Made by a program: the position numbers and the translations under genes. Below, piece by piece: positions 4,969 through 62,486 of a DNA stretch of 64,000 bases. Source of the stretch: Paramoeba atlantica (taxonomy: Eukaryota > Protista > Discosea); assembly GCA_977017575.1 (NCBI GenBank), contig CDRNVI010000074.1, positions 59,753 through 123,752 on the forward strand, given 5' to 3'. Numbering within the stretch: the stretch's first letter is position 1; each line of letters begins with the position of its first letter. The notes beneath the pieces are model-generated. The model had not been told where the DNA came from, did no database searches, and was given only the letters and a program-made list of their open reading frames with translations.

Positions 4969-5245
4969 TTTACGTCATCCGCAGCCCCTCACATGAACCT
5001 TTGAACATGAAGGAACTTCATGAAAACTCAGTTACACATAACAATCCTTTGACAATATTAACACAGCACAAATTCATTTTTCGGAAAAATGATTACCTGT
5101 CAAATAAAATACTCTCCCTCTCTTAATTTTTATAAATTATAAATTATAACAAAAAGTTAGTTATAATTATAATTATAATTATTTTTTATTTTAACGATAA
5201 AGATACATTTATTTCCTCCTTTCCTTCACTACTACTTCTCCCCCC

Positions 5246-7615
5246 ATGTCAGAACTCCCGCTCAAGGGACTCTTGTTCTGCGCTTACTGTGGCTCGAAAT
5301 TCGAACCACTCTCCCCCACCCACCGGTTGTGCCCAGTCTGTTTATCCACAACCGGCACTGCGTCCCGTATCATTTGGGACAAACCTAGCACCCTTGGGCC
5401 CGTTAACAACGGACTCAGGCAGACATCCACCTCCCGAGAGGCCACATCCCCCACCTCTCCTGAGCACAGGCCGTGCACCTTCTGCGCGCAGCCATTCTCC
5501 CCCAAGCGATCCTTCCACCGCCTATGCCACGATTGCGTGGAACTCCGCGCGGAGCGTCAGAAATCCGGTCTACAAACCTCCACTCCTGGCGCAGCCTCCT
5601 CCAGCTCCGCCCCTCGCCGTGACGACCACCCAGTTCGCCGCTCGCGCTCCCTCCCCCGCAGGTCATCCCCCAGAAGCTCGTCTTCCCGCGCGAGGTCGAA
5701 CTCGAGACCGCCCCTTCAACGACAGTCCGAAGGACCTCGCACACGCTCGCGGTCTAGGGTATCTTTCGCCCCCAGGAACACTTCTTCACATGACTCCGAA
5801 TCATACGCCGACAAGGCCAAGTCCCTTTCACCCCCGATTCTTAGGAAAACAAGGTTAGGTACAGATCCCCCCCCTCAAACCCCCACACCCCTTGGCAGAG
5901 CCCCATCACACAAGGAACAGCTAGCTCTCATAGGTAAGATGAACCAGGATTCCCTGGGTACCTACATCAAACACCAGCGAGACGACGGAGTGCCCTTCGG
6001 GTTGAAGAGGGAAGTGACAGCCAACCGGCTGTCATGCGCCGTCCGAGAAATGGAGAGAGAGTACCTGGCGACAAGGGATGCCCTCTACACCGAGTGGCTA
6101 GACCTCCTCTGTCAGGACGCCCGTCAGGAATACAGACATCGCCAGCTTGTCATAGACAAAGCCCATCTGTGTCAGACCTGCGGACAGGTTTTTCGGGACC
6201 AGCGACGCTTGATCGAGCACAAAACCGTCCATGAAGTGGCCGCGGCCCGGGCGATGGTATCCCGTCTCTCATCAGAGCACCGCCAGGGAGCGATGATGAT
6301 TGCGGAACAACAGTGGGCCTCTGCTGCCGACCTCTTCGACCATCTCTACCAACAACTCCAAAACCTGTACGCACTCCCCCCCGGCCCCTCCCCCGACCCC
6401 ACGGAAACGCACAACTTGGAAGTGGACGACCCTCCCCCTCCCTTTGCCGCCAAACCTCCCGCCCTCACAATCACCCCAACCGACGCCCCTAGTGGCCCTT
6501 ACCCATCACCTCCCCACCAGCAAGGCGGACACCAACCCTCATCTTCGACGCAACCCTCCGAAGAATCGTGGACTAGGGTCAACCTGCACCTCGGACCCCA
6601 CTTGGCCGGACACATCCAGGTCCCCGTCCCTGCCAGACACCCCCTACAGAGTTTCATACAAGCGGTGGGCTTTACTCTGGGGGTCCCCCCCGACCGTATA
6701 AGCCTGACCAACGAGCCGGGAGGGCCATACCTGGTGACCGATGAGGACCTGGCAGAGGCTGAGTGCATATGGGCCTCTCTGCTCACTCCAAACCACGGCC
6801 CCTCCCACGGTCCCCACGTCAAAGTCTTCGACGGATCGGGAGCAGGAGCAAGCATAGAGACGCCGTCCGATCTCCCAGGCGAACATATCCCCTTTTTCCT
6901 ATGCCACGCCCTGGGTATAGCCCAGTGCTTTGCAGGAGCCTGGACCCCGTTCGCGTCGGAGGGCGGAACGGCGTGCTGGAGCTTCACGCCCACGGGGGGA
7001 CTGATAGCTGACTCGGGGTGGTCGGCCGAGTTAGTCCGGTGTAACCTCCGTAGAGGGTGCATCGAAGCCAACCCGGGACCACGCCGCGCAAAACGGAAGA
7101 ATACAACGCCCAAATCCTCCGACCCCGCGGACAGTAACCCCGTGAACGTAACGGGACAGACGAGCACACAAACCGAGGACACCCCTACCCCACTACCCGA
7201 CCCCCACATTACAGACCCCATTCCCACACCCCCGCATCAGGGGGGGGCCAAGCCGGATGCCAGCGAGGATTGCGCCGAGGCTGGCAGCCTCAGAGCGGGC
7301 CCGTATCCAAAATCCCATTGTAATGGGGGGCCCATCCCGACACCCAACAGCTTTTCATCGGGCCCTAAGTCCACAACCCCTGTTCTGGGGGGGCCATGCC
7401 GGATGCCAGCGAGGATTGCGCCGAGGCTGGCAGCCTCAGAGCGGGCCCGTATCCAAAATCCCATTGTAATGGGGGGCCCATCCCGACGCCCCACAGCTTT
7501 TCACCGGGCCCTAAGTCCACAACCCCTGTTCTGGGGGGGCCATGCCGGATGCCAGCGAGGATTGCGCCGAGGCTGGCAGCCTCAGAGCGGGCCCGTATCC
7601 AAAATCCCATTGTAA
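5246..7615 (+). CDS. N-terminal part of the CRE-like element polyprotein
   Basis: Two CxxC..CxxC motifs, C2H2 finger CQTCGQVFRDQRRLIEHKTVH, Ser/Arg-rich tract, 2A-like GCIEANPGP; the frame runs into the repeats. Confidence 0.75.
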   Translation: MSELPLKGLLFCAYCGSKFEPLSPTHRLCPVCLSTTGTASRIIWDKPSTLGPVNNGLRQTSTSREATSPTSPEHRPCTFCAQPFSPKRSFHRLCHDCVELRAERQKSGLQTSTPGAASSSSAPRRDDHPVRRSRSLPRRSSPRSSSSRARSNSRPPLQRQSEGPRTRSRSRVSFAPRNTSSHDSESYADKAKSLSPPILRKTRLGTDPPPQTPTPLGRAPSHKEQLALIGKMNQDSLGTYIKHQRDDGVPFGLKREVTANRLSCAVREMEREYLATRDALYTEWLDLLCQDARQEYRHRQLVIDKAHLCQTCGQVFRDQRRLIEHKTVHEVAAARAMVSRLSSEHRQGAMMIAEQQWASAADLFDHLYQQLQNLYALPPGPSPDPTETHNLEVDDPPPPFAAKPPALTITPTDAPSGPYPSPPHQQGGHQPSSSTQPSEESWTRVNLHLGPHLAGHIQVPVPARHPLQSFIQAVGFTLGVPPDRISLTNEPGGPYLVTDEDLAEAECIWASLLTPNHGPSHGPHVKVFDGSGAGASIETPSDLPGEHIPFFLCHALGIAQCFAGAWTPFASEGGTACWSFTPTGGLIADSGWSAELVRCNLRRGCIEANPGPRRAKRKNTTPKSSDPADSNPVNVTGQTSTQTEDTPTPLPDPHITDPIPTPPHQGGAKPDASEDCAEAGSLRAGPYPKSHCNGGPIPTPNSFSSGPKSTTPVLGGPCRMPARIAPRLAASERARIQNPIVMGGPSRRPTAFHRALSPQPLFWGGHAGCQRGLRRGWQPQSGPVSKIPL

Positions 7616-8510
7616 TGGGGGGCCCATCCCGACACCCCACAGCTTTTCATCGGGCCCTAAGTCCACAACCCCTGTTCTGCGGGGGGGGGCATGCCGGATG
7701 CCAGCGAGGATTGCGCCGAGGCTGGCAGCCTCAGAGCGGGCCCGTATCCAAAATCCCATTGTAATGGGGGGCCCATCCCGACACCCCACAGCTTTTCATC
7801 GGGCCCTAAGTCCACAACCCCTGTTCTGGGGGGGGCATGCCGGATGCCAGCGAGGATTGCGCCGGGGCTGGCAGCCTCAGAGCGGGCCCGTATCCAAAAT
7901 CCCATTGTAATGGGGGGCCCATCCCGACACCCAACAGCTTTTCACCGGGCCCTAAGTCCATAACCCCTGTTCTGGGGGGGGCATGCCGGATGCCAGCGAG
8001 GATTGCGCCGAGGCTGGCAGCCTCAGAGCGGGCCCGTATCCAAAATCCCATTGTAATGGGGGGCCCATCCCGACACCCCACAGCTTTTCATCGGGCCCTA
8101 AGTCCACAACCCCTGTTCTGGGGGGGGGCATGCCGGATGCCAGCGAGGATTGCGCCGAGGCTGGCAGCCTCAGAGCGGGCCCGTATCCAAAATCCCATTG
8201 TAATGGGGGGCCCATCCCGACACCCAACAGCTTTTCACCGGGCCCTAAGTCCACAACCCCTGTTCTGGGGGGGGCATGCCGGATGCCAGCGAGGATTGCG
8301 CCGAGGCTGGCAGCCTCAGAGCGGGCCCGTATCCAAAATCCCATTGTAATGGGGGGCCCATCCCGACACCCAACAGCTTTTCACCGGGCCCTAAGTCCAC
8401 AACCCCTGTTCTGGGGGGGGCCATGCCGGATGCCAGCGAGGATTGCGCCGAGGCTGGCAGCCTCAGAGCGGGCCCGTATCCAAAATCCCATTGTAATGGG
8501 GGGCCAACCC
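7242..8510 (+). repeat. About 9 tandem copies of a 146-149-bp GC-rich unit inside the CRE-like element
   Basis: Unit starts at 7396, 7542, 7691, 7837, 7983, ~8130, 8276, ~8423; length differences lie mainly in a G-run. Confidence 0.95.
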
Positions 8511-8604
8511 CGCACTCTCACGGGACCCTGATCGAGCACATCGCGGCGGCCGCCAATGTACCCAAAACTTCTCAGCGGACGACGGGACAGGGGGGACATC
8601 GGAG

Positions 8605-10581
8605 GTGGGGGGAGTGTCTTCCACCACACGAAACAAGCAATCCACCCCGACAACCCAGGGCGCTCCAGTTGAGGTGCGTGGACAAGCCCCTTCCCCCGAA
8701 AATTTAGCAGAGCTCCTTGGGAGGGGGTCCTTACGTAAACTGTACGCACTCCAATACCCGGCTTGGAAGGAATACACTGCCAGTGTATGCCACGATTTTA
8801 TTAATAAGTCGGTGGAGGGCAAGGTCGAGATAGCCTGGAACCTCCTCCTCGCCGTTAAACGTTTCCTTTTCCTCCCCGAGGACAAGTTGTCGCAACGCCA
8901 GCTAGCGCGCGAACTTAGAATGCGCGCCCATTTAGAGGGGTCGGAGACCTTGGCTCCATCCCCGAGTCAGGCCAACGGCCCCCCGTGGTCTGTCAAAAAA
9001 CGGGTCGAGGAATTGTGCAGGGCGGGTTGCTTCTCCAGGGCGGCCAAAACGATGGAGGCGCCCCTTAATCCTCCGGCCAACCCCACGGCGGCCCTAGAAC
9101 AGGCAAAACGTCTACACCCCACAGGCGGGCCCTACACTGCGGGGAAATTCAGGTACAACAGGGACCGACACGGAACCCTACCCTCCCCCGCCGATGTGGC
9201 CAGGAAGGCTCAAATCCTGGCCCCTATCCGCGCCCCCGGACCTACGGGATGGACCAAGGAACTGCTTGTCCCAGTCCTCATGGAAGATGGACCCCGCGAG
9301 TGTATCACGTGGATAATCCACGGGATAATGACCAACTCCCTCCCCCCCTCAATGAGGGAACTGCTCACGGGGGCGTCCTTAAAACTATTCACCAAACCGG
9401 ACTCCCCGGCGGGGCACCACTCTTCCTACAGGCCCATCGCCATGGGAGAGTGCATCCTCAAGGTGGCGGGGCTCCTTGCCCTGGAGAAAATCCGGGAACA
9501 TCTCCCCACTTACTTTCAGGGCATCCAGTTTGGAGCCCAATACGCGCAGGGGTGTGAGCACATAATTTATAATGTGCGACAGCACTTCAGGGACAGGCCG
9601 AAGGAGGTCATCGTGGCGGCAGACCTCGAGAACGCCTTTAATAGCATCTCACGGTCGGCAATTTTTAGGGCGGTAAGGGGGGATCCGAAACTTCTCCCCA
9701 TTGAGGGCATCACCCTTTTCAGCTACGGCCCCACCAGTACCCTTCACCTTGGGGAAGGCCAATGCATCACGAGCTCAAGGGGGGTCAAGCAGGGCGACCC
9801 CATGGCTCCCATCCTATTTGCCATAGGGATCCAGGGGGCAATCGCCAGAGTGGCGGCCAACTTCACAGGCACGCTGAAGGTCTGGGCGTACCTGGATGAC
9901 GTCACCTTTGCTGGTGAACCCAAGGTTTGCGCGGAAGCCCTAGAGGCCCTCCGCGAGGAGCTGAAACATCTTGGGCTACGGTTAAATACCGCTAAATGCA
10001 AAGTAGCTACCAGACGCGAGGACCTCTTCTCCGAGTTCTCCGGATCTCGCATGGTCCACTCCCCCGGGGGGGTCAAACTACTGGGGGCCTTCATCGGGGT
10101 GTCGGAGGCTAGGGAGGAAGAATGGGTGCTTTCCAAGGCCCCCAAGGTAATCTCCTTCCTGGGGAAACTCAAGGACATTAGCAGGCAATGCGCCTTGCCC
10201 CTTTTAAGACTCTGTGGGAGTCCTCGATGGAACTACATCGTAAGGACCCACGACCCCCCGGTCACTAAAGTGGCCAATACCCAGGTCGACAAAGCCGTCC
10301 TGGCATGTGCTGAGGCCTTGCTCGGGGGGATGGGCTCCTTGGGAAAAACGCCGTTCTCCAATAACCTTTTCACGGCAGATTTCCTGGGGACCATCCCCTT
10401 CGCGCACAAGGCGGAAGACATGCAGGCCAAGGCGAAGAACGCCCTACAGGCCGACCCCAAGGCATGTCAGCCAAGGAACAGCGGCGCAACCTCTGTGAGG
10501 CCGCGTTGGGGAAAGCCCCGACGGCCACCCAACTGGTCTGCATGCGACAGACCCAGAACATTCACTCCACTAAGTGGATGA
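8605..10581 (+). CDS. Reverse transcriptase region of the CRE-like element
   Basis: YRPIAMGE, IQFG, DLENAFNSISR, GVKQGDPMAPILF, AYLDDV, GLRLNTAKC. Confidence 0.9.
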   Translation: MGGVSSTTRNKQSTPTTQGAPVEVRGQAPSPENLAELLGRGSLRKLYALQYPAWKEYTASVCHDFINKSVEGKVEIAWNLLLAVKRFLFLPEDKLSQRQLARELRMRAHLEGSETLAPSPSQANGPPWSVKKRVEELCRAGCFSRAAKTMEAPLNPPANPTAALEQAKRLHPTGGPYTAGKFRYNRDRHGTLPSPADVARKAQILAPIRAPGPTGWTKELLVPVLMEDGPRECITWIIHGIMTNSLPPSMRELLTGASLKLFTKPDSPAGHHSSYRPIAMGECILKVAGLLALEKIREHLPTYFQGIQFGAQYAQGCEHIIYNVRQHFRDRPKEVIVAADLENAFNSISRSAIFRAVRGDPKLLPIEGITLFSYGPTSTLHLGEGQCITSSRGVKQGDPMAPILFAIGIQGAIARVAANFTGTLKVWAYLDDVTFAGEPKVCAEALEALREELKHLGLRLNTAKCKVATRREDLFSEFSGSRMVHSPGGVKLLGAFIGVSEAREEEWVLSKAPKVISFLGKLKDISRQCALPLLRLCGSPRWNYIVRTHDPPVTKVANTQVDKAVLACAEALLGGMGSLGKTPFSNNLFTADFLGTIPFAHKAEDMQAKAKNALQADPKACQPRNSGATSVRPRWGKPRRPPNWSACDRPRTFTPLSG

Positions 10582-11252
10582 ACGCATGGCCCAACAGGCC
10601 GGAGTATTACATGCGGGACCCGCAGTGGGAGACTGCGGCCCGTCTCCGGTACTTGGTCGCCCCCACCTCGGAACCTGAGCTCCAGTGCGTGTGCGGTGCA
10701 ACCCTCCGCAATGAGGAGTTTTGCGTACACGCACTGGATTGCAAAAAGGTTAAGGGGAAGACCCAGGCCTCCCGCCACAAGGAGGTCAAGGAAACCTTTC
10801 GAAACCTTCTTGTGCAGTATGGTTTCAAACCGGACCTACACGAACCGAGGTTCGACAATGGACGGGGGCCCGGCATATGCTTCCAGCTGGGACGGAAGAC
10901 TGCCCTAGTTGATGTCACCGTGGTGAACCCACTGGCCCCGTCCTACGTGGAGAAGGAGGCCGCAGAGCCCTCTCATACCCTGAGGATGGCAGAGGCCAAC
11001 AAGCGGCGCTCACACGATGAGATGGCGACCGCCCGAGGGATGGAATTTTACCCCTTGGCCTTCACCACGTATGGGATCCCGGGCCCAGAGACTTTGAACT
11101 TCCTAACCAAGGTGGCCCGGGCTCACTCATCCGACAAGAACGGATGCATGTCCCACCTTCTGATGGCCATAGGGGTGGCCATCCAGAAAGGTAATGCCCA
11201 GATTGTACAGGCGGCAGTACAAGACTGGTACCGCCGCGGGGTACGAGGCTAG
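10464..11252 (+). CDS. C-terminal restriction-like endonuclease of the CRE-like element, frameshifted from the RT near 10455-10465
   Basis: CVCG..HALDC zinc knuckle, SRHKEVK, RGPGI..VDVTVVNP, AEANKRRSH, FYPLAFTTYG. Confidence 0.8.
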   Translation: MSAKEQRRNLCEAALGKAPTATQLVCMRQTQNIHSTKWMNAWPNRPEYYMRDPQWETAARLRYLVAPTSEPELQCVCGATLRNEEFCVHALDCKKVKGKTQASRHKEVKETFRNLLVQYGFKPDLHEPRFDNGRGPGICFQLGRKTALVDVTVVNPLAPSYVEKEAAEPSHTLRMAEANKRRSHDEMATARGMEFYPLAFTTYGIPGPETLNFLTKVARAHSSDKNGCMSHLLMAIGVAIQKGNAQIVQAAVQDWYRRGVRG

Positions 11253-11578
11253 CTGGGCGATGGGATTAGGGAGGGAGGGGGTATAATTATAATTATAAAA
11301 ATTAATGATACCGTGTAAATGACCGCTATTCCAAAAGGTCGACGCTAGTACGATCTGTAAGATGGTAGTGCCAGGGAAGACCGCGAGTAGATCCCGGCCA
11401 TGCTTCCCCATGCAGATTTTTTTCAGCGAATCGCGTTTTACAAAAATCAGTATCTTCATCTCAGAAAGAAAATCCCCCCCAAAAAGATTGTCTTTTCCCC
11501 TACATGAGCATTTTTTCATGAATCAATATCTGAAGCTGAGAGTCAAATAAGCAAAAGAAATCACATAGAGGTAATGTA

Positions 11579-40369: not shown

Positions 40370-42345
40370 TTTTTTTGATTTTCATTTTCCATGCGCCAAG
40401 CAAGCCCGGTCCGTGAGCTAACGGACCCGCTCACCAGGTCCCTGTACACTAGAGATTTTCACTCCGGATAGTCCTCGCAAAGATCAGGATCTTGTTCCGA
40501 AAGAGATTTTCCTACTCAAGCTGTTTGTGGTGGGTTCCAGGTGGGGTTCTGTCGCATAGTATATAGCCTAAATGAAGCCTGAAGTGCAGTAAGGGCAAAG
40601 TTTTCACGCATTTTGCGAACGTGGTGTTTATGATCTTTTGGGAATACCCAGGAAAGATCGAGCGTACTATCGCTAAGTTTGCCCCGAGCTCCGACCTCAA
40701 ATGTTATGAGGCTCGTGCGTACGTTTGTTGCCTGTCGGTAGCGCAAAATCTCCTCGTACTTTGCGCGCTTTCGTTCGCGGGCTTGATCAAAATTTTCTTC
40801 CCACGGGGAGGTGAGTTCAATGATGTATTCTGAGCCATCTTCTAGGAGAATCCACCCATCTGGTCGTAGTGTGCTAAAGTTTGCTAGCCATGATGGTGGG
40901 TGCTCCTCGGAGGGGTTGCCAGGTAGATCAAAAGACATTGCTCGTATGTGACCACAACTTCGAAGCGTGTCTAGTAGGACCTTCAAAATCATATTGTGTC
41001 GGTATGTATAACGGCCTTGTAAGAGAGATGTTGTACAGCTGGTTAGGACATGTCGTAAGGTTTGCTTCCTTTCACGACAGATCGGACAGATGACGTGTCC
41101 ATCAGCCTTCCCCCATGCACGTGAGTTAGATAGGCTCGGCGGGGCGTAACTGGTCATGACCATCGAGGTAAACCGAGAGAGTTCTTTTCCATGTATATTG
41201 TGCAGAGCTCGCGCAAAATCCTCAGCTAACTCAGCATCTGTCTCCTCACTAAACCATTTAGCTGCGACGGGAGCGCGGCGACGATACTCAGCTATCAGCT
41301 CGTTTTCGGTGTATCGGCGGACCCAAGCTCTGGTGCTCTGTTTGTCATGAAGTCGGTCGGCTGCGAGGATAGCGGGTCTGTGGTGGTGTGCGGAGTCAAG
41401 AGTTTTCTCCCATTCCATGCGCCCTTCTAATACGTGTTGTGTGACTATATCCGAAGAAGACTGGAGAGTCGCAAGACAGGAGACGGTGCATTCGCGCCAG
41501 AGTTGGGTCATTGATGTTAGTCCCCATCCCCCATTTTTGATGTAGAGCTGGTCGGGCTGTGCGTATGCTGCAAGGTTGACCCATTTTCGCAGGAAGCGGC
41601 TGCACGTTTTCTGTAGTCTTTTGATGAGATTGAGTGTAAGCCCGTCATGTACAGTGAGAAGATAGCGCATTCTGGATAACACCGCATTTTCGTACATCCA
41701 CATACGTGCATGTATCGCGTGCTTGCTCTGGTCGATGCGGGTCATCATTGTACGTAACCTTTTCCGCATTTCATCAAAGACCACTCGGGGTGTGCTTCTT
41801 CCGGTTGACAATATCATACCCAAGAACTTCGTACCCTTGTGAGCTATATGCGGGATCTCCTCGCTACGAAGGACAAGCTTAGGAGAGAGCGTAGTGAATC
41901 CACGGTGTGTGCTTTGTCCCAAGCAGTAGACGCGACATTTTGAGGTGTTAGGCTTCATAAGTAGGGAAGAGAGCGCAGTTTCGAAGATTTCAGAGACTTC
42001 TTGTGCTTGCGTCGGAGTTTGCGTAAGGAAAGTCACGTCGTCGGCAAACGCTTTGCAGAAATGAGAGTCCTGGCCGTCATGGTACCCGAAAGTGGGGCGT
42101 GCCTTGCGAACGTAACGTATTATGGTTTCCATCACAAGGTTAAATAAAATTGGTGAAAGCGTGTCGCCCTGGAGTACTCCAATATGTACGTTGATTGGTT
42201 CTGTAAGTCCGGATTCCAGCTTGAGCTGTATTTCTGCATTCTCATAGAGCTTTCGGAGGTAATGGATAATAACTGGGTCGATATGAGCCCTTTTTAGTAC
42301 TGCGATAATTATTTCATGTGGGACGGAACCGAAGGCGTTTGCCAG
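40370..42345 (-). mobile_element. 5'-truncated R2-superfamily (HERO-like) non-LTR retrotransposon
   Basis: Frame open from LANAFGSVPH (42345) through GVLQGDTLSPILF, FADD, CPIC..TLRHVLTSC, QGRYTYRHN, LRPDG..IIELTSPWEE, RERKRAKY to stop at 40516; A-run near 40370. Confidence 0.85.
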
Positions 42346-44510: not shown

Positions 44511-44802
44511 TTGCGTTACAATAACTCTGTCACCAGGCAGTCTGACTCGCAAAATCGGACTCCACCGATAAATAGGCAGGATGGCATGTTCATTAACGTC
44601 TGAAAATCTGCGGCACCGCAATTTAAATCTGCACCCATCCTAACACATCACACAATATATCAACCAATCTTCTCGGTCATCCGCAATCCCGGTCAATGCC
44701 TCCTACAAAGATCTCAACGACACCTATAATCAGGCCAGCAATCGTGGAAAATTTGTGCAAATCCAATATATGCATGAACACCCTCACGGGTGGACCTTGT
44801 TT

Positions 44803-45333
<531 letters not shown>

Positions 45334-47233: not shown

Positions 47234-47531
47234 TTGCGTTACAATAACTCTGTCACCAGGCAGTCTGACTCGCAAAATCGGACTCCACCGATAAATAGGC
47301 AGGATGGCATGTTCATTAACGTCTGAAAATCTGCGGCACCGCAATTTAAATCTGCACCCATCCTAACACATCACACAATATATCAACCAATCTTCTCGGT
47401 CATCCGCAATCCCGGTCAATGCCTCCTACAAAGATCTCAACGACACCTATAATCAGGCCAGCAATCGTGGAAAATTTGTGCAAATCCAATATATGCATGA
47501 ACCTTGTTGATTAAATAGGGGAATACCCCAA

Positions 47532-50500
47532 ATGAAACCATGTCGTCGTAAGCACAAGCGAGGAGGCAGAAGCCGGAAACGTCGAAAAGAGCGAGCTACC
47601 TTCTACGGCCGACAACGAAAGAGTCGTCGAAGGAATACAAACAATAGAGCTCCCATAAAATCCAAAAGTCCGCGTACCGATGATCCCGCGACTACCGAAA
47701 CTGAGAAAATATCACAGACCCCTGACAAGATTACGAGGCAAAGCAGAATCACCGTACACAAACGGCAAGCGCCAGCCAAAAAGAATGCACTTAAGAAAAC
47801 ATCGATCCGTCGTAAAAAAGGAAGAAAAGGTACTAGTCGAGCCGCCAGCCGACCAAGGAAAAAGAGTCGACCTCGAGGATTCACCGCCGGAACATATAAC
47901 GTGAGGACATGGAATGCAAAGCAACGTGACCCACAGGGAACCTGGATGGAGGGAGCTATATCAACCATTCGTATGGCGTCAATCGCTGGAATCGACCTCC
48001 TAGCCGTCCAGGAGTGCCGAATACCAGGAGTCGACAAAGTCGAAATCCCAGTTCAAAAAGGTGAAACATGGACGCTCATACACAGCGGTTGCAAGACTGG
48101 GAAACTCCAGAGAGGAGTTGGTTTCTTACTTAGTCCTAAGGCAAGTAAGGCGCTGATAAGCTTTGAAGGCGTATCAGATAGAATATTAACTGCAAGCTTT
48201 AAAATTGCCAACACCCGCAACATGTATGCAATCTCCGCATATGCGCCCACTGAAGATTCCCTATCCTGCGAAAAGAACGGTTTCTACGCAGATCTGGAGG
48301 ACGCCATGGCCAATAGACCCAACCAAGAAATTCCCCACATTTTCGGGGACTTCAACGCAGTAATAAAGAGCACCCCGCTACTGTTTCCCAACGTCGGATC
48401 AAACGCAACAGGAATCAAGACAAGTGACAACGGCCGCAGATTGGCCGAATTCTCAAAGATACATAGACTCATTTTGTCTAACACCTCACTGGAGCAGTCA
48501 AACGAAAATAGTCTCGGAGACCAAGCTTGGACCTGGAGACACCCTGCAGGGCTGACTCAGAACCAAATAGACTATATCTTAATACCTCTACATGTTCTAG
48601 GAGAAAACACAACAGTAATTTCGGAATTACCGTATGAGAGTGACCATCGCATAGTGTGTACAACACTGAGCTATCGACCGTCAACAAAGAAAAAGAACTC
48701 CCGCACTATAAATTGCATTGAACCACTGCGCGCAAACCCCTCAAAGCAGCAATTGTACCAGGAGCTAATGGGCGTAAAATTACAGCATCACTCACTGAGT
48801 GAGGATATAGAATCAGAATGGAGTGACCTAAAAATCGCTCTCTTAGAAACATCCAAGCAAGCATGCGCTAACACTTGTATCCAAACCAACCTCCCATGGA
48901 TGAATGACGAACTCTTACGAAAGATAGCAGAAAAACAAGACTCTCTATTGCGATACAAGTCGCATCATTCAACTTCTAAGGAAAAAGAGAAGGCACACCT
49001 TAATTATCGCTGCAAACGTCGAATAGCCTTTCGTTCTTTCAGGTTAGCAAAGCGTACCTACTTCGCCCAAAAGGTAAAGCAGATTGAGACTGTCAGGGCT
49101 GAGGGAAATCACCACAAGCTATTTAAACTAACAAAAGAATTGACAAAACTAACCTACCCACCAAATAACGATAAACCTGCAATTCGAAACAAAGATGAAA
49201 TGGTCTCTGACCCAGAGGCCAAAGCGCAAGCACTGGCCACTTCCTTTTCTAGGATATTTAACACACCAAACCCCCTATTTAATTTATCCAGAGTACAACA
49301 AGACCTAGAAGAACTAAAGTACCCTGCCATAGAGGACGATGTCCTTCGCATGGAAAAAGAAGAAAATAGTTATCCTCCAAACGAACTGGAAGTAGAACGC
49401 GCACTGTCTACACTAAAAAATAGGAAAGCACAAGGCCCAGACGGAATTTTCCCCGAACATCTCAAATATGCAGGAAAAGCCGCAATTATTTGGATGACAT
49501 GGATATTGAAACTTTGCTGGCAAAACTCCAAGGTTCCCAAAGAGTGGACGCACTCCCACATCATACCAATCTACAAAGGCGCAGCAAAAGGCAAAGCCTG
49601 CGATCCCGGATCCTACCGCCCAATTTCAATAATGAGCCCTGCAGCGAAAGCCCTATCTGGCATACTCACACATCGTATTGCAGCGCGCGTCGATGCTAGA
49701 CTTCTAGAAGCCCAAAATGGCTTCCGACATAATAGAGGTATAGACGATGCGATCTTCATACTCAGAAGAATCACGGAGGAAGTCAGGAGACACAAATCAC
49801 CGTTATATCTTGCCTACCTGGATCTCGAGAAGGCTTATGATACCTTACCACGAGAGGCAGTCTGGGCCACCCTTCAGAGTTTGAAAATTGAAGGACCATT
49901 ATTGGAACTAATTCGCGCACTATATAACACAACAACTGCAAGCGTCATGTTAAACGACGGCACGAAGAGTGAAAGCTTCGAAATACCTGGCGGCTTAAAA
50001 CAAGGCTGTCCAATGAGCTGCCTGCTATTCAAGGGTTATGATCATACGCTCGTGGCGCAGAGATGCGTCTCTCTGTGTGACGGCCGATACCATCGGCGCA
50101 TGACCCGCATACGACGGGTGTCACACAGAGAGTGGAGTGCGAGGTAGGAGACGAGACGCCCATCGGTCATGCTACAGCACGTATAGCCATGGTTCATGCT
50201 GCAACACGATCAAGCCGTGGGTTCATGCTGTCAGATGGTCTATCGTGGATCATGATGCATCATGGGGAGGTCCGTTACCGCCGCACTCGCTACAGCATGT
50301 AGGGAGAGAGGGGTGCAAGTTCGCATCCCCTATACACTCATACAACGTGTCCTCCCGCTGTAGCACGCCCAGTGGTCCTCAAGGGAGGCCACCATGGCGC
50401 ATAGCTCCCGGGAGAAGAAAGCACGAGAAGGAGAGAGCCGGGGAGGGAAGAAAGCTCACTCGAAGAGAGCGAGCCGGGGAGGGGTGAAGAGTGCGAAGTG

Positions 50501-51646
50501 CGTCCCCTACTTCCGCGACAAAGAGGGACAGTTTCAGCTAGCCGTCAGCCGGAAACGGGCATTTAAAAGTAAGAATACGCCCGTTTCCGGGAAAAGAAAG
50601 GAAGGGCTAGCAAAATGTACCAACAAGGTACAGAAAACAACATTTGATGCTGTACTCCGGAAAGCACTACAGATTAAAACTGCAGGCATCCGTGTCGAAT
50701 GGAGGATCCCAAAAGGAAGAGCTCAACGAGGCGATAAAGTAACCGGTACAGATGTTTTCGGACTCATAGCGTATGCGGATGACCTTGTTCTTTGGTCGGA
50801 CGAACAAACGGAACTGCAAAATACCTTAAACGCAGTAGTAGGGGTTATGAACCGATGGGGAATAAGGATAAACACAAGGAAAACTAAAACACAGGTAATT
50901 CAACCTTGCAAAGAGAAGAAACTATTGAACAAGTACGGAACTTCTCATACCTTGGAACAGTCATCAGTGAAGATGCTTCATTGGAAGAAGAAATAGAAAA
51001 CAGAATAAGAAGAGCTTGCGCAGGTATGAGAAAATTTAGAGACTTGTGGAAAGACAAGGCTATCACAAGGAAAACGAAAAGACTCATCCTGGAAGTCTGT
51101 ATAGTACCAATTCTACTATATGCGAGCTCAACGTGGGCGCTTACACCAACCCAGCATCTGAAACTCAACCGCGCCTATATAAGATACATCAAAACATCTT
51201 TCGGCATACCATGGGTCAAGAACGACAATAGCGCCTACAATGATAAACAGCACCAAGAATCTGCGAAGGATGCAATAAGATATACCTCCCAGAAGGAATG
51301 CCTATCGATCGCAGGAATGGACCCACTCCAGCCACAAATAGATGCCCGAAGTTTACTGTTTGCTGGACACGTCGCAAGAATGGGTCCAGATAGATTCCCG
51401 AACAGAGTGTTATTCGGCAAATATCGATCAACTCAAAATAGAGGAAATACATATAAACGAAGCCTGCCATGCTATAGTAGAAGCCTTGTAGCTGCACTGG
51501 AAAGAGTTGGGATAACAACAGATTGCTCATGGAAACTGAAAGCCCAGAATAAAAAAAGTTGGATAAAGATAATAGATGAATATAGAAAGAGCACGAAAAC
51601 CCAAACGTTAAACAAAGGTAATAAAAAATCATTCTCAAGGAACTAA
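47532..51646 (+). pseudogene. APE-RT ORF of LINE copy 1, interrupted and frameshifted
   Basis: APE: TYNVRT, LAVQEC, GVGFLL, SAYAPT, GDFNA, NQIDYIL, SDH. RT: SYRPISI, QNGFR, YLDLEKAYD, GLKQGCPMS, YADD, FAGHVARM. Confidence 0.85.
50031..50633. other. 603-bp structured insertion (X2) splitting RT copy 1
   Basis: Lies between codons TTC and AAA; four in-frame stops; homologous to X1; ends antisense to SL. Confidence 0.85.
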
Positions 51647-52529
51647 AACTGTGTGAACGCTAGACCCTGTAATGGATAGGCCTGAAATGCACCCTGAAGA
51701 TGAGCCCCTAAGGGGAACTTCATACCGCTTTTCGGGTTGGGTACCGCTCATCTGCGGCTTGCAACTGACCCATTAAAACGGGGTTAGGGTCAGAATTCGG
51801 AGAGATAGGAGCTCTTTGAAGCCGAAGTTTAGCCCGTTGAAGCTGAGGAGCCAAGGCCACTCGGGGGTATAACACCCTAGAAGACTTGGTCCATTGAAGC
51901 TGAGGAGTCTAAACTGTTGAAGCTGAGACTCAACGCTCCCGAACTATGCCAGCAAGCAGTAGTGGGCGGCTACTCCGGGGGAGGCCACTCTCGGTCCTGC
52001 GGAACATACTTATGTAGTCCTTGGATTTGCATGCTGTCCTTGGATTTGAATGTCTCAACCTGAAAGGGTTAAGATAGTTCAGCGGACAAGGTGGATGAAA
52101 ATCCACCTTTGAGTGATAGCCTCCCCCAAAGCTACCTCGGCTTACTCCGGGGAGGCAACATCCCCAATGGGATAGAAAGCCTAACAACATTCACATTCAA
52201 CATATGCATGAACACCCTCACGGGTGGACCTTGTTTATCATACGCTCATTGGCGCAGAGATATTCCCCTTAATGCGACGGTCGATATCATCGGCACATGA
52301 TCCGCCCACAACGGATGTCGCACCAAGGGGCATTTGGAACGATAACACGAGGCAGAGTCACGCACAGCGGTACTCAAGGGGAAGTCTCAAGGGAAAAAAG
52401 CTCACTCAAAGAGTGAGCCGGGGAGGGGTAATGGGAAGCGCGTCCCCTGCTTCACCGAAGAAAGAGGGGCAGTTTCGCCCTTACTGCCGGCCGGCAACGG
52501 GCATGTAACAGTAAGACTCTTCCCGGTGC

Positions 52530-52667
<138 letters not shown>

Positions 52668-53913
52668 TACGGAACGTAAAAAATAGGTAGCCTCAATTGT
52701 GGTCCCGGTGAGGCCCCGGAGTTGCGAGAAGCCTCCATACCCCACAACTACCACCTTCCCCCCCTATTTAGCGGGGGTCGCGCAAGCGACCCCTGATAAA
52801 TGGGGGGAAGGTGGTAGTTGTTTTGGGGGAAATGAGAGGCCGAACGCACGGAGGGGCCGGCCGGGCCATTGAGTCACGTCAAAGTGTGACGCTGAGTTCG
52901 TGGGAAGCAATTTGCGAAGCCCTAGGTGATGCTCAGTTGTATTGGGCGACACCGAGACAAACCACGGAAATCCCAGATACGACAAGGTCTAGATATCATA
53001 AAGAGAGAAAAAACCGGAGCTGTAGACGCGAAAAAGAATGACAGAGATATAACAATGCGATATGCGACCGATGAGTTGAGTCGATGCGTGTGCTGACTCT
53101 ACCTTCCACCGTCATTCACAGAAAATTAACAAAAAATGTATTATGACAGATAAGGGTGCAGTATGACAGATAAGGGTGCGGCTTATATGACAGATAAGGG
53201 TGCAGTATGACAGATAAGGGTGCATTATGACAGATAAGGGTGCAGTATGACAGATAAGGGTGCATTATGACAGATAAGGGTGCGAGTTTCTATGACAGAT
53301 AAGGGTGCGGGTGCCCCGGCTTCGAATACGCGGAACGCTTCTGACCACACCTTTGTCTGCGGGGGAAAACCTCCGAATGCGTGGGTCGATCAGTAAACGG
53401 AAATCTTCCTTAGATGGGAGCTTACGTGTGTTAGGCTATCTGTTCGATACACCGCAGCAGCAAGGTGACACCTCTCGATGCCAGAGGATTCCGCTTCCTT
53501 GGTATGCAGACGTTACATCCATCCCACCACCTGCTCCAGTAGCGTGGCACCGCACTTCCTGACGGGGAGTATGGGGATGTAAAGGCACCTATGCCATATC
53601 GATACTCCACAGAGTATCGACCGTTCAGCGACCAGGCACTTTCCTCCAAGTTTCCCTGCTTTCTCAGGGGAGGCGACATCATTGAACAAGGGTAACCGCC
53701 TGTTTTACATACATTCATACATACAAAGGCATCTATGCGCCCTGTATTATAAAGCCGTACGTAAAAATCACAGCGTCCCGAGGACTCAATGCCGATTCGA
53801 AACGCAACTAGGCCCTTGAGGTGAGAGAGGCAAAGACGACACTGAAGAAAATCTCGTGAAACGTCGTGAAAGGTCGTCGAAACCTCACCACCTGATTCCT
53901 CTTGCATTTAAAA

Positions 53914-54032
53914 AGAGTACAACACTCAGGGTTCCCGAGCGATCGCTCACCTCAGTACTAACTGAGCCTGACGGTGCTTAACTTCACAAAGCGAACGGGA
54001 TGTGGTGTTTTCACCGTAGTATGGTCGTACCC
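53914..54032 (-). rRNA. 5S rRNA
   Basis: Array copy. Confidence 0.97.
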
Positions 54033-54421
54033 GGCGTAACTTGTGAAATCCCCACTATGAAAGAAATATTTTCCACGACAATCTGCCTCATCCTGAGTGT
54101 CCCACAGAGGCGCTACTCACCATGTTTACGCTATCGCAGTGGCTTCCGGGGTTTTTATCATTCGAAAAGGTCACACGGGCTGAGGATCGAACCTCCGTGC
54201 AAGTGTTTTGACATTCAGCACATGGCTACAGTTTGCCACGTGTTGCGAAAATTGACGGGGCGGGAATCGAACCAGGAGTTTGGTTCGTCAGTCTCAGAAA
54301 AGCACGCCCTGCCACTAGACAAGTTTCCAGGTTGCATTTTGGGCTAAGACTCGTGGAACAACAAGTTCATCAGTTTGACAAAAGCGAACAATGAGCTCTG
54401 GTGGTTGGTAAAGCCCTTGTT

Positions 54422-54527
54422 AACTTTAACGATAAAGATACAGTTTCTGTACCTTGTTGGTATGAGAAGCTTCGAACTCTAAGTTCGCTTGAAGGCCCCG
54501 GTTCCCGAGAAGGGAACTGGGGCTTAT
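54422..54527 (+). ncRNA. Spliced-leader RNA
   Basis: Array copy. Confidence 0.92.
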
Positions 54528-54796
54528 TTGCGTTACAATAACTCTGTCACCAGGCAGTCTGACTCGCAAAATCGGACTCCACCGATAAATAGGCAGGATG
54601 GCATGTTCATTAACGTCTGAAAATCTGCGGCACCGCAATTTAAATCTGCACCCATCCTAACACATCACACAATATATCAACCAATCTTCTCGGTCATCCG
54701 CAATCCCGGTCAATGCCTCCTACAAAGATCTCAACGACACCTATAATCAGGCCAGCAATCGTGGAAAATTTGTGCAAATCCAATATATGCATGAAC

Positions 54797-57700
54797 CTTG
54801 TTGATTAAATAGGGGAATACCCCAAATGAAACCATGTCGTCGTAAGCACAAGCGAGGAGGCAGAAGCCGGAAACGTCGAAAAGAGCGAGCTACCTTCTAC
54901 GGCCGACAACGAAAGAGTCGTCGAAGGAATACAAACAATAGAGCTCCCATAAAATCCAAAAGTCCGCGTACCGATGATCCCGCGACTACCGAAACTGAGA
55001 AAATATCACAGACCCCTGACAAGATTACGAGGCAAAGCAGAATCACCGTACACAAACGGCAAGCGCCAGCCAAAAAGAATGCACTTAAGAAAACATCGAT
55101 CCGTCGTAAAAAAGGAAGAAAAGGTACTAGTCGAGCCGCCAGCCGACCAAGGAAAAAGAGTCGACCTCGAGGATTCACCGCCGGAACATATAACGTGAGG
55201 ACATGGAATGCAAAGCAACGTGACCCACAGGGAACCTGGATGGAGGGAGCTATATCAACCATTCGTATGGCGTCAATCGCTGGAATCGACCTCCTAGCCG
55301 TCCAGGAGTGCCGAATACCAGGAGTCGACAAAGTCGAAATCCCAGTTCAAAAAGGTGAAACATGGACGCTCATACACAGCGGTTGCAAGACTGGGAAACT
55401 CCAGAGAGGAGTTGGTTTCTTACTTAGTCCTAAGGCAAGTAAGGCGCTGATAAGCTTTGAAGGCGTATCAGATAGAATATTAACTGCAAGCTTTAAAATT
55501 GCCAACACCCGCAACATGTATGCAATCTCCGCATATGCGCCCACTGAAGATTCCCTATCCTGCGAAAAGAACGGTTTCTACGCAGATCTGGAGGACGCCA
55601 TGGCCAATAGACCCAACCAAGAAATTCCCCACATTTTCGGGGACTTCAACGCAGTAATAAAGAGCACCCCGCTACTGTTTCCCAACGTCGGATCAAACGC
55701 AACAGGAATCAAGACAAGTGACAACGGCCGCAGATTGGCCGAATTCTCAAAGATACATAGACTCATTTTGTCTAACACCTCACTGGAGCAGTCAAACGAA
55801 AATAGTCTCGGAGACCAAGCTTGGACCTGGAGACACCCTGCAGGGCTGACTCAGAACCAAATAGACTATATCTTAATACCTCTACATGTTCTAGGAGAAA
55901 ACACAACAGTAATTTCGGAATTACCGTATGAGAGTGACCATCGCATAGTGTGTACAACACTGAGCTATCGACCGTCAACAAAGAAAAAGAACTCCCGCAC
56001 TATAAATTGCATTGAACCACTGCGCGCAAACCCCTCAAAGCAGCAATTGTACCAGGAGCTAATGGGCGTAAAATTACAGCATCACTCACTGAGTGAGGAT
56101 ATAGAATCAGAATGGAGTGACCTAAAAATCGCTCTCTTAGAAACATCCAAGCAAGCATGCGCTAACACTTGTATCCAAACCAACCTCCCATGGATGAATG
56201 ACGAACTCTTACGAAAGATAGCAGAAAAACAAGACTCTCTATTGCGATACAAGTCGCATCATTCAACTTCTAAGGAAAAAGAGAAGGCACACCTTAATTA
56301 TCGCTGCAAACGTCGAATAGCCTTTCGTTCTTTCAGGTTAGCAAAGCGTACCTACTTCGCCCAAAAGGTAAAGCAGATTGAGACTGTCAGGGCTGAGGGA
56401 AATCACCACAAGCTATTTAAACTAACAAAAGAATTGACAAAACTAACCTACCCACCAAATAACGATAAACCTGCAATTCGAAACAAAGATGAAATGGTCT
56501 CTGACCCAGAGGCCAAAGCGCAAGCACTGGCCACTTCCTTTTCTAGGATATTTAACACACCAAACCCCCTATTTAATTTATCCAGAGTACAACAAGACCT
56601 AGAAGAACTAAAGTACCCTGCCATAGAGGACGATGTCCTTCGCATGGAAAAAGAAGAAAATAGTTATCCTCCAAACGAACTGGAAGTAGAACGCGCACTG
56701 TCTACACTAAAAAATAGGAAAGCACAAGGCCCAGACGGAATTTTCCCCGAACATCTCAAATATGCAGGAAAAGCCGCAATTATTTGGATGACATGGATAT
56801 TGAAACTTTGCTGGCAAAACTCCAAGGTTCCCAAAGAGTGGACGCACTCCCACATCATACCAATCTACAAAGGCGCAGCAAAAGGCAAAGCCTGCGATCC
56901 CGGATCCTACCGCCCAATTTCAATAATGAGCCCTGCAGCGAAAGCCCTATCTGGCATACTCACACATCGTATTGCAGCGCGCGTCGATGCTAGACTTCTA
57001 GAAGCCCAAAATGGCTTCCGACATAATAGAGGTATAGACGATGCGATCTTCATACTCAGAAGAATCACGGAGGAAGTCAGGAGACACAAATCACCGTTAT
57101 ATCTTGCCTACCTGGATCTCGAGAAGGCTTATGATACCTTACCACGAGAGGCAGTCTGGGCCACCCTTCAGAGTTTGAAAATTGAAGGACCATTATTGGA
57201 ACTAATTCGCGCACTATATAACACAACAACTGCAAGCGTCATGTTAAACGACGGCACGAAGAGTGAAAGCTTCGAAATACCTGGCGGCTTAAAACAAGGC
57301 TGTCCAATGAGCTGCCTGCTATTCAAGGGTTATGATCATACGCTCGTGGCGCAGAGATGCGTCTCTCTGTGTGACGGCCGATACCATCGGCGCATGACCC
57401 GCATACGACGGGTGTCACACAGAGAGTGGAGTGCGAGGTAGGAGACGAGACGCCCATCGGTCATGCTACAGCACGTATAGCCATGGTTCATGCTGCAACA
57501 CGATCAAGCCGTGGGTTCATGCTGTCAGATGGTCTATCGTGGATCATGATGCATCATGGGGAGGTCCGTTACCGCCGCACTCGCTACAGCATGTAGGGAG
57601 AGAGGGGTGCAAGTTCGCATCCCCTATACACTCATACAACGTGTCCTCCCGCTGTAGCACGCCCAGTGGTCCTCAAGGGAGGCCACCATGGCGCATAGCT

Positions 57701-59529
57701 CCCGGGAGAAGAAAGCACGAGAAGGAGAGAGCCGGGGAGGGAAGAAAGCTCACTCGAAGAGAGCGAGCCGGGGAGGGGTGAAGAGTGCGAAGTGCGTCCC
57801 CTACTTCCGCGACAAAGAGGGACAGTTTCAGCTAGCCGTCAGCCGGAAACGGGCATTTAAAAGTAAGAATACGCCCGTTTCCGGGAAAAGAAAGGAAGGG
57901 CTAGCAAAATGTACCAACAAGGTACAGAAAACAACATTTGATGCTGTACTCCGGAAAGCACTACAGATTAAAACTGCAGGCATCCGTGTCGAATGGAGGA
58001 TCCCAAAAGGAAGAGCTCAACGAGGCGATAAAGTAACCGGTACAGATGTTTTCGGACTCATAGCGTATGCGGATGACCTTGTTCTTTGGTCGGACGAACA
58101 AACGGAACTGCAAAATACCTTAAACGCAGTAGTAGGGGTTATGAACCGATGGGGAATAAGGATAAACACAAGGAAAACTAAAACACAGGTAATTCAACCT
58201 TGCAAAGCAGAAAAGTATTACACATCCGAGATAAAAGCACAAGAAGAAACTATTGAACAAGTACGGAACTTCTCATACCTTGGAACAGTCATCAGTGAAG
58301 ATGCTTCATTGGAAGAAGAAATAGAAAACAGAATAAGAAGAGCTTGCGCAGGTATGAGAAAATTTAGAGACTTGTGGAAAGACAAGGCTATCACAAGGAA
58401 AACGAAAAGACTCATCCTGGAAGTCTGTATAGTACCAATTCTACTATATGCGAGCTCAACGTGGGCGCTTACACCAACCCAGCATCTGAAACTCAACCGC
58501 GCCTATATAAGATACATCAAAACATCTTTCGGCATACCATGGGTCAAGAACGACAATAGCGCCTACAATGATAAACAGCACCAAGAATCTGCGAAGGATG
58601 CAATAAGATATACCTCCCAGAAGGAATGCCTATCGATCGCAGGAATGGACCCACTCCAGCCACAAATAGATGCCCGAAGTTTACTGTTTGCTGGACACGT
58701 CGCAAGAATGGGTCCAGATAGATTCCCGAACAGAGTGTTATTCGGCAAATATCGATCAACTCAAAATAGAGGAAATACATATAAACGAAGCCTGCCATGC
58801 TATAGTAGAAGCCTTGTAGCTGCACTGGAAAGAGTTGGGATAACAACAGATTGCTCATGGAAACTGAAAGCCCAGAATAAAAAAAGTTGGATAAAGATAA
58901 TAGATGAATATAGAAAGAGCACGAAAACCCAAACGTTAAACAAAGGTAATAAAAAATCATTCTCAAGGAACTAAAACTGTGTGAACGCTAGACCCTGTAA
59001 TGGATAGGCCTGAAATGCACCCTGAAGATGAGCCCCTAAGGGGAACTTCATACCGCTTTTCGGGTTGGGTACCGCTCATCTGCGGCTTGCAACTGACCCA
59101 TTAAAACGGGGTTAGGGTCAGAATTCGGAGAGATAGGAGCTCTTTGAAGCCGAAGTTTAGCCCGTTGAAGCTGAGGAGCCAAGGCCACTCGGGGGTATAA
59201 CACCCTAGAAGACTTGGTCCATTGAAGCTGAGGAGTCTAAACTGTTGAAGCTGAGACTCAACGCTCCCGAACTATGCCAGCAAGCAGTAGTGGGCGGCTA
59301 CTCCGGGGGAGGCCACTCTCGGTCCTGCGGAACATACTTATGTAGTCCTTGGATTTGCATGCTGTCCTTGGATTTGAATGTCTCAACCTGAAAGGGTTAA
59401 GATAGTTCAGCGGACAAGGTGGATGAAAATCCACCTTTGAGTGATAGCCTCCCCCAAAGCTACCTCGGCTTACTCCGGGGAGGCAACATCCCCAATGGGA
59501 TAGAAAGCCTAACAACATTCACATTCAAC
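54797..59529 (+). mobile_element. RTE-like APE-RT retrotransposon, copy 2 (intact apart from the 603-bp insert)
   Basis: TSD at 54785-54796 and 59530-59541; ORF halves 54826-57324 and 57928-58974 share one frame. Confidence 0.93.
57325..57927. other. 603-bp structured insertion (X2) splitting RT copy 2
   Basis: Appears identical to 50031-50633. Confidence 0.85.
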
Positions 59530-59857
59530 ATATGCATGAACACCCTCACGGGTGGACCTTGTTTATCATACGCTCATTGGCGCAGAGATATTCCCCTTAA
59601 TGCGACGGTCGATATCATCGGCACATGATCCGCCCACAACGGATGTCGCACCAAGGGGCATTTGGAACGATAACACGAGGCAGAGTCACGCACAGCGGTA
59701 CTCAAGGGGAAGTCTCAAGGGAAAAAAGCTCACTCAAAGAGTGAGCCGGGGAGGGGTAATGGGAAGCGCGTCCCCTGCTTCACCGAAGAAAGAGGGGCAG
59801 TTTCGCCCTTACTGCCGGCCGGCAACGGGCATGTAACAGTAAGACTCTTCCCGGTGC

Positions 59858-59979
<122 letters not shown>

Positions 59980-61839: not shown

Positions 61840-62424
61840 TTGCGTTACAATAACTCTGTCACCAGGCAGTCTGACTCGCAAAATCGGACTCCACCGATAA
61901 ATAGGCAGGATGGCATGTTCATTAACGTCTGAAAATCTGCGGCACCGCAATTTAAATCTGCACCCATCCTAACACATCACACAATATATCAACCAATCTT
62001 CTCGGTCATCCGCAATCCCGGTCAATGCCTCCTACAAAGATCTCAACGACACCTATAATCAGGCCAGCAATCGTGGAAAATTTGTGCAAATCCAATATAT
62101 GCATGAACACCCTCACGGGTGGACCTTGTTTATCATACGCTCATTGGCGCAGAGATATTCCCCTTAATGCGACGGTCGATATCATCGGCACATGATCCGC
62201 CCACAACGGATGTCGCACCAAGGGGCATTTGGAACGATAACACGAGGCAGAGTCACGCACAGCGGTACTCAAGGGGAAGTCTCAAGGGAAAAAAGCTCAC
62301 TCAAAGAGTGAGCCGGGGAGGGGTAATGGGAAGCGCGTCCCCTGCTTCACCGAAGAAAGAGGGGCAGTTTCGCCCTTACTGCCGGCCGGCAACGGGCATG
62401 TAACAGTAAGACTCTTCCCGGTGC

Positions 62425-62486
<62 letters not shown>

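Follow-up and report, generated by a model that had tools for sequence, protein, structure and literature searches.

Results

Two interrupted LINE copies in an array of 5S rRNA and spliced-leader RNA genes

The subject of this study is a stretch of 64,000 nucleotides from the Paramoeba atlantica assembly GCA_977017575.1 (contig CDRNVI010000074.1, positions 59,753 to 123,752; in the following called the window), in which two copies of a long interspersed nuclear element (LINE) carry the same block of 605 nt within their reverse transcriptase (RT) domain. An initial annotation had offered two explanations for this block, namely (a) disruption of the LINE by a non-autonomous element prior to the duplication of the array unit, or (b) a non-canonical intron or ribozyme whose removal gates the expression of the RT. 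The comparison with insert-free DNA from the same organism speaks strongly for the first of these.

The region from 40 to 64 kb of the window is a tandem array with units of approximately 2.5-2.7 kb, which contain a 5S rRNA gene on the minus strand and a spliced-leader (SL) RNA gene on the plus strand. Two of the units are 7.3 kb long, since each of them holds a 4.7-kb LINE at one fixed site of the spacer. The features needed for the analysis of the block are the following:

53914-54032, minus strand: 5S rRNA gene of the unit with LINE copy 2, detected by the Rfam scan
54422-54459, plus strand: exon of the SL RNA gene of the unit with LINE copy 2, the source sequence for a 19-nt match in the block
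54797-59529, plus strand: LINE copy 2, with APE endonuclease and RT in a single long open reading frame (ORF) and the 12-bp target-site duplication ATATGCATGAAC at 54785-54796 and 59530-59541
47503-52201, plus strand: LINE copy 1, the same as copy 2 save for the loss of 34 bp after 50913 and the additional frameshift that results
54826-57324, plus strand: left ORF piece, 833 codons without a stop, comprising the APE endonuclease and the RT up to ...GLKQGCPMSCLLF
57928-58974, plus strand: right ORF piece, 348 codons and a stop in the same frame, comprising the rest of the RT (with YADD) and the C-terminal region
57327-57931, minus strand: inserted block of copy 2, 605 nt standing at the TG of the empty site by comparison with an insert-free contig
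50033-50637, minus strand: inserted block of copy 1, 100% identical to the block of copy 2

The SL exon ends with ...CAGTTTCTGTACCTTGTTG, followed by GTATGAG, and the SL is of the kinetoplastid/diplonemid type. The best named relatives of the RPA1 gene in the window are those of Perkinsela (53%) and of trypanosomes (about 43%). From the SL type and the RPA1 relatives we conclude that the DNA most likely stems from a kinetoplastid outside the trypanosomatids.

The host LINE has the features of an APE-type non-LTR (long terminal repeat) retrotransposon: an endonuclease domain upstream of the RT, one ORF and target-site duplications. The endonuclease match (Exo_endo_phos, residues 151-372) is weak, with an E-value of 0.005 that is below Pfam's own cut-off, and the RVT_1 match (residues 692-833) is clear and resumes in the right ORF piece. 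The 34 bp missing from copy 1 correspond to 58208-58241 in copy 2 coordinates, and the rest of both LINEs is identical over 4.7 kb. A protein search with the RT part returned three distant proteins only and no full-length product from the source organism; the nearest homologue found is a tick LINE protein, Ixodes P0001 (...PTLFNIYINN).

The first seven nucleotides of the LINE, CTTGTTG, are the last seven of the SL exon and stand directly after the target-site duplication (54785-54803; 47491-47509 in copy 1). This start suggests, as far as the sequence can tell, that the LINE RNA had been trans-spliced and thus carried the SL before its reverse transcription.

The block splits the reverse transcriptase but preserves the reading frame

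The initial annotation had placed the block at 57325-57927, which is the same block shifted within an AA ambiguity, and its coordinates and counts are borne out. The 603 bases are 100% alike in both copies (50031-50633 and 57325-57927), flanks included, and they contain four stops in the frame of the LINE, at 57439, 57478, 57547 and 57655 (50145, 50184, 50253 and 50361 in copy 1). Removal of the block joins 833 and 348 codons in one frame (54826-57324 and 57928-58974). The break lies inside the RT domain, since the Pfam RVT_1 match of the left piece ends at profile position 130 of 205 and that of the right piece starts at position 149 of 205. The exact borders lack GT-AG, the AA ambiguity and a CAAGG repeat are both present at the junction, and a comparison of the LINE copies confirmed that both flanks are otherwise intact in copy 2.

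A different outcome was obtained for the two joins that had been proposed for the restored protein, LLFKTTFD and LLFKVQKTTFD. Neither of them is ancestral, since the true empty site reads LLFNATFD. The spacing in homologues was no guide to the junction, as RT domains 4 and 5 are linked by a loop of variable length (38 residues here versus 30 in Ixodes P0001); the junction was settled by a DNA contig. The CCTTG that ends the block and derives from the SL accounts, together with chance, for the CAAGG repeat.

Insert-free LINE DNA exists in public data

Four public runs of this organism, which contain approximately 0.8 of the words of the stretch, provided the contigs that were aligned to 54700-59500; the depths of these Logan contigs are used as rough abundance guides only. 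Run X1 is genomic DNA, since its longest contig has a length of 228 kb. The initial annotation had called for a search for insert-free LINE copies, whose existence it named as one part of what would refute option (b), and such DNA was indeed found. A contig of 2,827 nt from X1 runs from 54795 to 57326, continues with TG and then with 57932-58155, and only one other letter is different, which amounts to 1 base in approximately 2,750. The same joint with the same TG is present in run X3.

The empty site TTCAATGCAACA therefore reads TTC AAT GCA ACA (LLF-NA-TFD), and the filled site reads TTCAA[605 nt]CAACA. Hence, insert-free LINE DNA exists, and in the filled copies 605 nt (57327-57931) stand in place of TG, which is a net gain of 603 nt. 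That the frame was kept is a one-in-three coincidence. The asparagine following LF in the empty reading also occurs in Ixodes P0001 (LLF-NA-TFD compared to ...PTLFNIYINN).

The TG also gives the direction of the change. Inside its two borders the block has GG and AA, and TG can therefore arise from no cut of the filled copy. Since excision cannot create this dinucleotide, the empty form is the ancestral one and not a processed product.

The same DNA data contain the LINE-free junction at the target site of the LINE itself (loose ends at 54796), where the 12-bp duplication flanks the element. In X1, the contig of the LINE 3' half (58157-59237) has a depth of 304, compared to 136 for the 5' half (54861-57114). 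This approximately 2.2-fold difference fits a LINE family with many 5'-truncated copies. In the 3' untranslated region from 59047 on, the depth is still higher and many variants occur, which is why part of this region must be common to other repeats.

The block belongs to an abundant structured repeat family and has a probable SL-derived head

The block is by far more abundant than the LINE in which it resides. Its contigs reach depths of approximately 900-1,500 and more, compared to 136-304 for the LINE flanks in the same runs, and the k-mer depth of near-identical block contigs is 4-9 times as high as that of the LINE (among them a contig over 57335-57631 with 3 differences and a depth of 1247, and one over 57542-57687 with 1 difference and a depth of 1518). 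The family is dispersed: contigs from X5 and X4 depart from the window sequence at 57329 and 57333, respectively, into unrelated flanks, and paralogues occur in the array spacer. There is no coding capacity, as the block contains the four stops in the LINE frame and the ORFs inside it have no Pfam match. A scan of the whole window at the Rfam gathering thresholds matched 5S rRNA alone. Since ARAGORN found no tRNA in the region of 40-64 kb, the block is not a tRNA-derived short interspersed nuclear element (SINE).

Both ends of the block have distinctive features, and a shorter paralogue is found in the spacer:

57912-57930, minus strand: SL-derived head, identical in 19 of 19 positions to SL exon nt 23-38 and the GTA that starts the intron
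57329-57365, minus strand: the element's 3' end, made up of ATCTC, a small stem-loop and TGATCATAAC in this order, without poly(A)
44803-45098, plus strand: array spacer paralogue, shorter than the block, approximately 77% identical to block nt 11-96 and 414-560 and followed by (GA)n
52237-52532, 59565-59860 and 62132-62427: further spacer copies of the same paralogue

The element is read on the minus strand because an SL can sit only at the 5' end of an RNA. In this direction the truncated SL head comes first and is followed by a pyrimidine-rich stretch, then by a structured body, and at the end by ATCTC with the small hairpin and TGATCATAAC. Other copies of the family part from the window sequence at 57329 or 57333, and the end of ATCTC, hairpin and TGA is present in the block as well as in the spacer copy. 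At the opposite end, an X4 contig goes on after 57930 with CTGTATCTTTA, which represents 11 more bases of antisense SL. The three letters after the exon, GTA, are those with which the intron starts, and the source of the head may thus be an unspliced SL RNA rather than a trans-spliced RNA.

The predicted fold of the block is far more stable than that of shuffled sequence (z = -6.5). In the stems shared by the block and the spacer paralogue we found 4 + 4 compensatory base-pair changes, i.e. four double changes per module. This covariation suggests a structured RNA family, the comparison comprising two sequences. At 57700-57790 there is an imperfect internal duplication of the GAGCCGGGGAGGG motif, with one copy on either side of a hairpin (GCTCACTC...GAG(C/T)GAGC), and this hairpin has perfect pairing in the block on the minus strand only.

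The spacer of every array unit has the paralogue, starting approximately 22 bp downstream of the LINE target site. In a unit without LINE this target is located at 44768-44779 and the repeat at 44803-45098; the repeat might have a part in target definition. A (GA)n tract of approximately 230 bp comes after the spacer repeat copy (45098-45330) and recurs at this position in all units. Read on the minus strand, it forms a long pyrimidine tract that lies upstream of the element, and its position matches that of the SL head and the short pyrimidine run of the RT insert.

X5, the only run labelled as RNA, contains a 153-nt contig of the family over 57329-57462, which derives from another locus and has a different flank before 57329. 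Members of the family may thus be transcribed, with DNA carry-over as an alternative source of this contig.

Two further RT-related features lie elsewhere in the window. A CRE-like retrotransposon (5187-11310, RT at 8605-10581) is situated within a (TTATAA)n microsatellite. Its first bases, TTTAACGATAAAGATACA, correspond to SL exon nt 4-21, and its 3' end is unlike that of the block. At the array edge, an ORF on the minus strand (40519-42135) encodes the C-terminal half of an RT domain (RVT_1 positions 134-204).

Discussion

Origin and history of the block

Overall, we consider it highly probable that the block is a nested insertion, in which an abundant structured non-coding repeat entered the RT of a young LINE copy and was then duplicated together with the 7.3-kb unit. 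The existence of insert-free LINE DNA, an abundant family with other flanks, and filled copies that are identical to each other all support this, and option (a) of the initial annotation is thereby upheld. The element itself appears to be a retroposon on the minus strand with a 5'-truncated SL head (nt 23-38) and a conserved hairpin end.

The following course of events can be proposed. An SL-carrying RNA was probably copied by the reverse transcriptase of a partner LINE, and the copy would then have been joined at a break in the host LINE, with the loss of two target bases. A recently active repeat would thus have struck a recently inserted, array-specific LINE copy, since empty and filled site differ by 1 base in approximately 2,750 and the block is only about 1% away from the dominant contigs of its family. 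The filled unit of 7.3 kb, consisting of an array unit plus the LINE, would have been duplicated through array turnover, and one of the copies would later have lost 34 bp. The insertion should have preceded the duplication, because the filled copies are identical to each other. The insertion would inactivate both LINE copies and not regulate them.

A more far-reaching idea is that the block represents a recently active SINE-like family headed by the SL, whose 5' end comes from SL RNA, either by trans-splicing or by copying of the unspliced form, and which is recognised via its covarying structure and not via poly(A). Such a family would constitute a class of non-autonomous retroposon in a kinetoplastid-like protist; we regard this as a tentative proposal, whose chances we put somewhat below even.

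Several observations weigh against the insertion of a retroposed copy. There is no target-site duplication of the block, as the comparison of empty and filled site reveals that TG was lost and nothing duplicated. No contig among those listed from the public runs bridges the filled junction, so that the filled form is known only from the window's own assembly. A partner LINE with the 3' end of the block was sought in the window, and both the CRE-like element (5187-11310) and the host LINE end differently. The contig depth is higher over the SL-proximal half of the block, whereas simple 5' truncation of a minus-strand RNA should give the reverse; subfamilies that share modules could explain this excess. 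Finally, the G-U wobble pairs are split as evidence for the transcribed strand, with one favouring each.

Alternative explanations

The alternative that survives best is an event at the DNA level, in which a piece of the repeat adjoining an SL gene was captured at a double-strand break or via ectopic gene conversion. We regard such a capture as unlikely. It would agree with the absence of a target-site duplication and of a poly(A) tail, and with the replacement of two target bases. The block also has SL-gene flanking sequence including the intron bases GTA, and one contig places the family beside more antisense SL. However, a head that starts inside the SL combined with a conserved structured 3' end has the look of a 5'-truncated retrocopy, and the LINE of the same array also begins with the end of the SL. 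Furthermore, the family is abundant and young, with contigs approximately 1% off the block.

According to option (b), the block would be a removable intron or a self-cleaving or self-splicing RNA that gates the RT, and the insert-free DNA would consist of retrocopies of processed RNA. The length in multiples of three, the intact flanks of copy 2 and the strong RNA structure are in line with such an element, as are cryptic in-frame GT...AG pairs, for example donor 57329 with acceptors 57898 or 57904. However, these pairs leave extra residues, and combinations of GT/GC and AG in frame near the borders carry no weight, because they are common by chance (370 in a scan whose range was over-wide). 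The exact borders are GG..AG, GT..GG or AA..AG, none of which is a spliceosomal pair. There is no polypyrimidine tract before any AG, and the last 60 nt of the block are purine-rich on the plus strand (GGGAAAAGAAAGGAAGGG...). Searches with the covariance models of Rfam 15 over 57200-58050 on both strands, with E-values up to 10, returned no match to a group I or group II intron or to a small self-cleaving ribozyme core; the only hits, to miRNA and sRNA models, were weak noise. In the minimum-energy and centroid folds, no pairing links the two ends of the block: the 5' end pairs internally or remains unpaired, and the 3' end forms local hairpins. The RNA data leave room for this alternative, since the single 153-nt contig of X5 comes from another repeat copy, with zero coverage of the LINE. 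The empty site, too, argues against option (b), as it has TG where the filled copy has AA and cannot be a processed product of the latter. Moreover, the family of the block is dispersed and present in many copies, which have other flanks, and it includes the spacer paralogue. Taken together, the empty-site TG, the Rfam searches and the unpaired block ends make a removable element extremely improbable.

It is just as hard to believe that the filled LINE copies are an assembly artefact of the repeat-rich array, for although the listed public contigs include none that crosses the filled junctions and the block variants at 57450, 57503 and 57632 are absent from those contigs, the same site is filled in two units that differ by a 34-bp indel, the public runs contain approximately 0.8 of the words of the stretch, and contigs built from short words lose rare variants and break at repeats, so that a missing bridge says little.

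Significance

With the nested insertion as the preferred explanation, the locus illustrates how one transposon knocked out two copies of another and how the dead copy was multiplied by the turnover of the array. At the same time, the appealing but wrong idea of an intron or ribozyme that gates the RT of a retrotransposon is removed. The analysis also yielded an exact pair of empty and filled site, evidence for very recent activity of an array-specific LINE and of a structured repeat family (99-99.96% identity), and a dated example of an SL-headed retrocopy. The SL-headed structured repeat family is the part that merits a study of its own.

Comparison with known systems

Nonconventional introns of euglenids have non-GT-AG borders, short border repeats that make the cut ambiguous, and a structured RNA whose ends base-pair. 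The block resembles them in its borders without GT-AG, in the border repeats that blur the cut and in its strongly structured RNA. It differs in that its ends are unpaired and that the empty site is explained by an insertion with changed letters and not by precise excision. Unlike the euglenid hosts, the organism studied here has an SL and an RPA1 of the kinetoplastid type. Such euglenid introns are cited in PMC10161547 (ref. 43).

The elements CRE, SLACS and CZAR are specific for the SL genes of trypanosomatids, and CRE and SLACS possess a restriction-like endonuclease. SLACS-like genes have also been mentioned for Diplonema (PMC10161547), and the LINE Mutsu of zebrafish is specific for 5S rDNA and has copies that share an identical 26-nt gap (PMC5340908). 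The host LINE is similar to Mutsu, CRE and SLACS, as it is found at a single fixed position of the tandem SL/5S units, flanked by a 12-bp target-site duplication, and it shares with Mutsu the multiplication of defective copies by array turnover. In contrast to these elements, it inserts in the spacer and not in the 5S or SL gene, and in contrast to CRE and SLACS its endonuclease is of the APE type.

In dinoflagellates, retroposed genes have SL relics at their 5' end (PMC5585692, PMC12014239). As in those cases, the presence of an SL in the DNA at the 5' end of a retrocopy indicates descent from an RNA that carried the SL, and this applies to the block and to the LINE alike. However, the organism is kinetoplastid-like in the present case, the cargo of the block is a repeated non-coding element and not an mRNA, and after the SL come the three bases GTA with which the SL intron starts.

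SINE-type retroposons nested in LINEs have been described, as have composite SINEs that combine a head derived from a small RNA with a tail recognised by a LINE (PMC4494074, PMC5786205). Like SINEs, the block is short, non-coding and far commoner than the LINE, and its other copies are otherwise flanked; it is 5'-truncated, has a structured 3' end without poly(A) and sits inside another transposon. Unlike SINEs, the block copy lacks a target-site duplication, and no partner LINE in the window can be tied to it. A further difference concerns the head, which is a piece of the SL, whereas classical SINEs (PMC4494074) have one from a tRNA, 7SL, 5S or small nuclear RNA gene with an internal RNA polymerase III promoter. 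A SINE-like insertion nested in a LINE is common as such, and its unusual aspects lie in the context in which it is found here.

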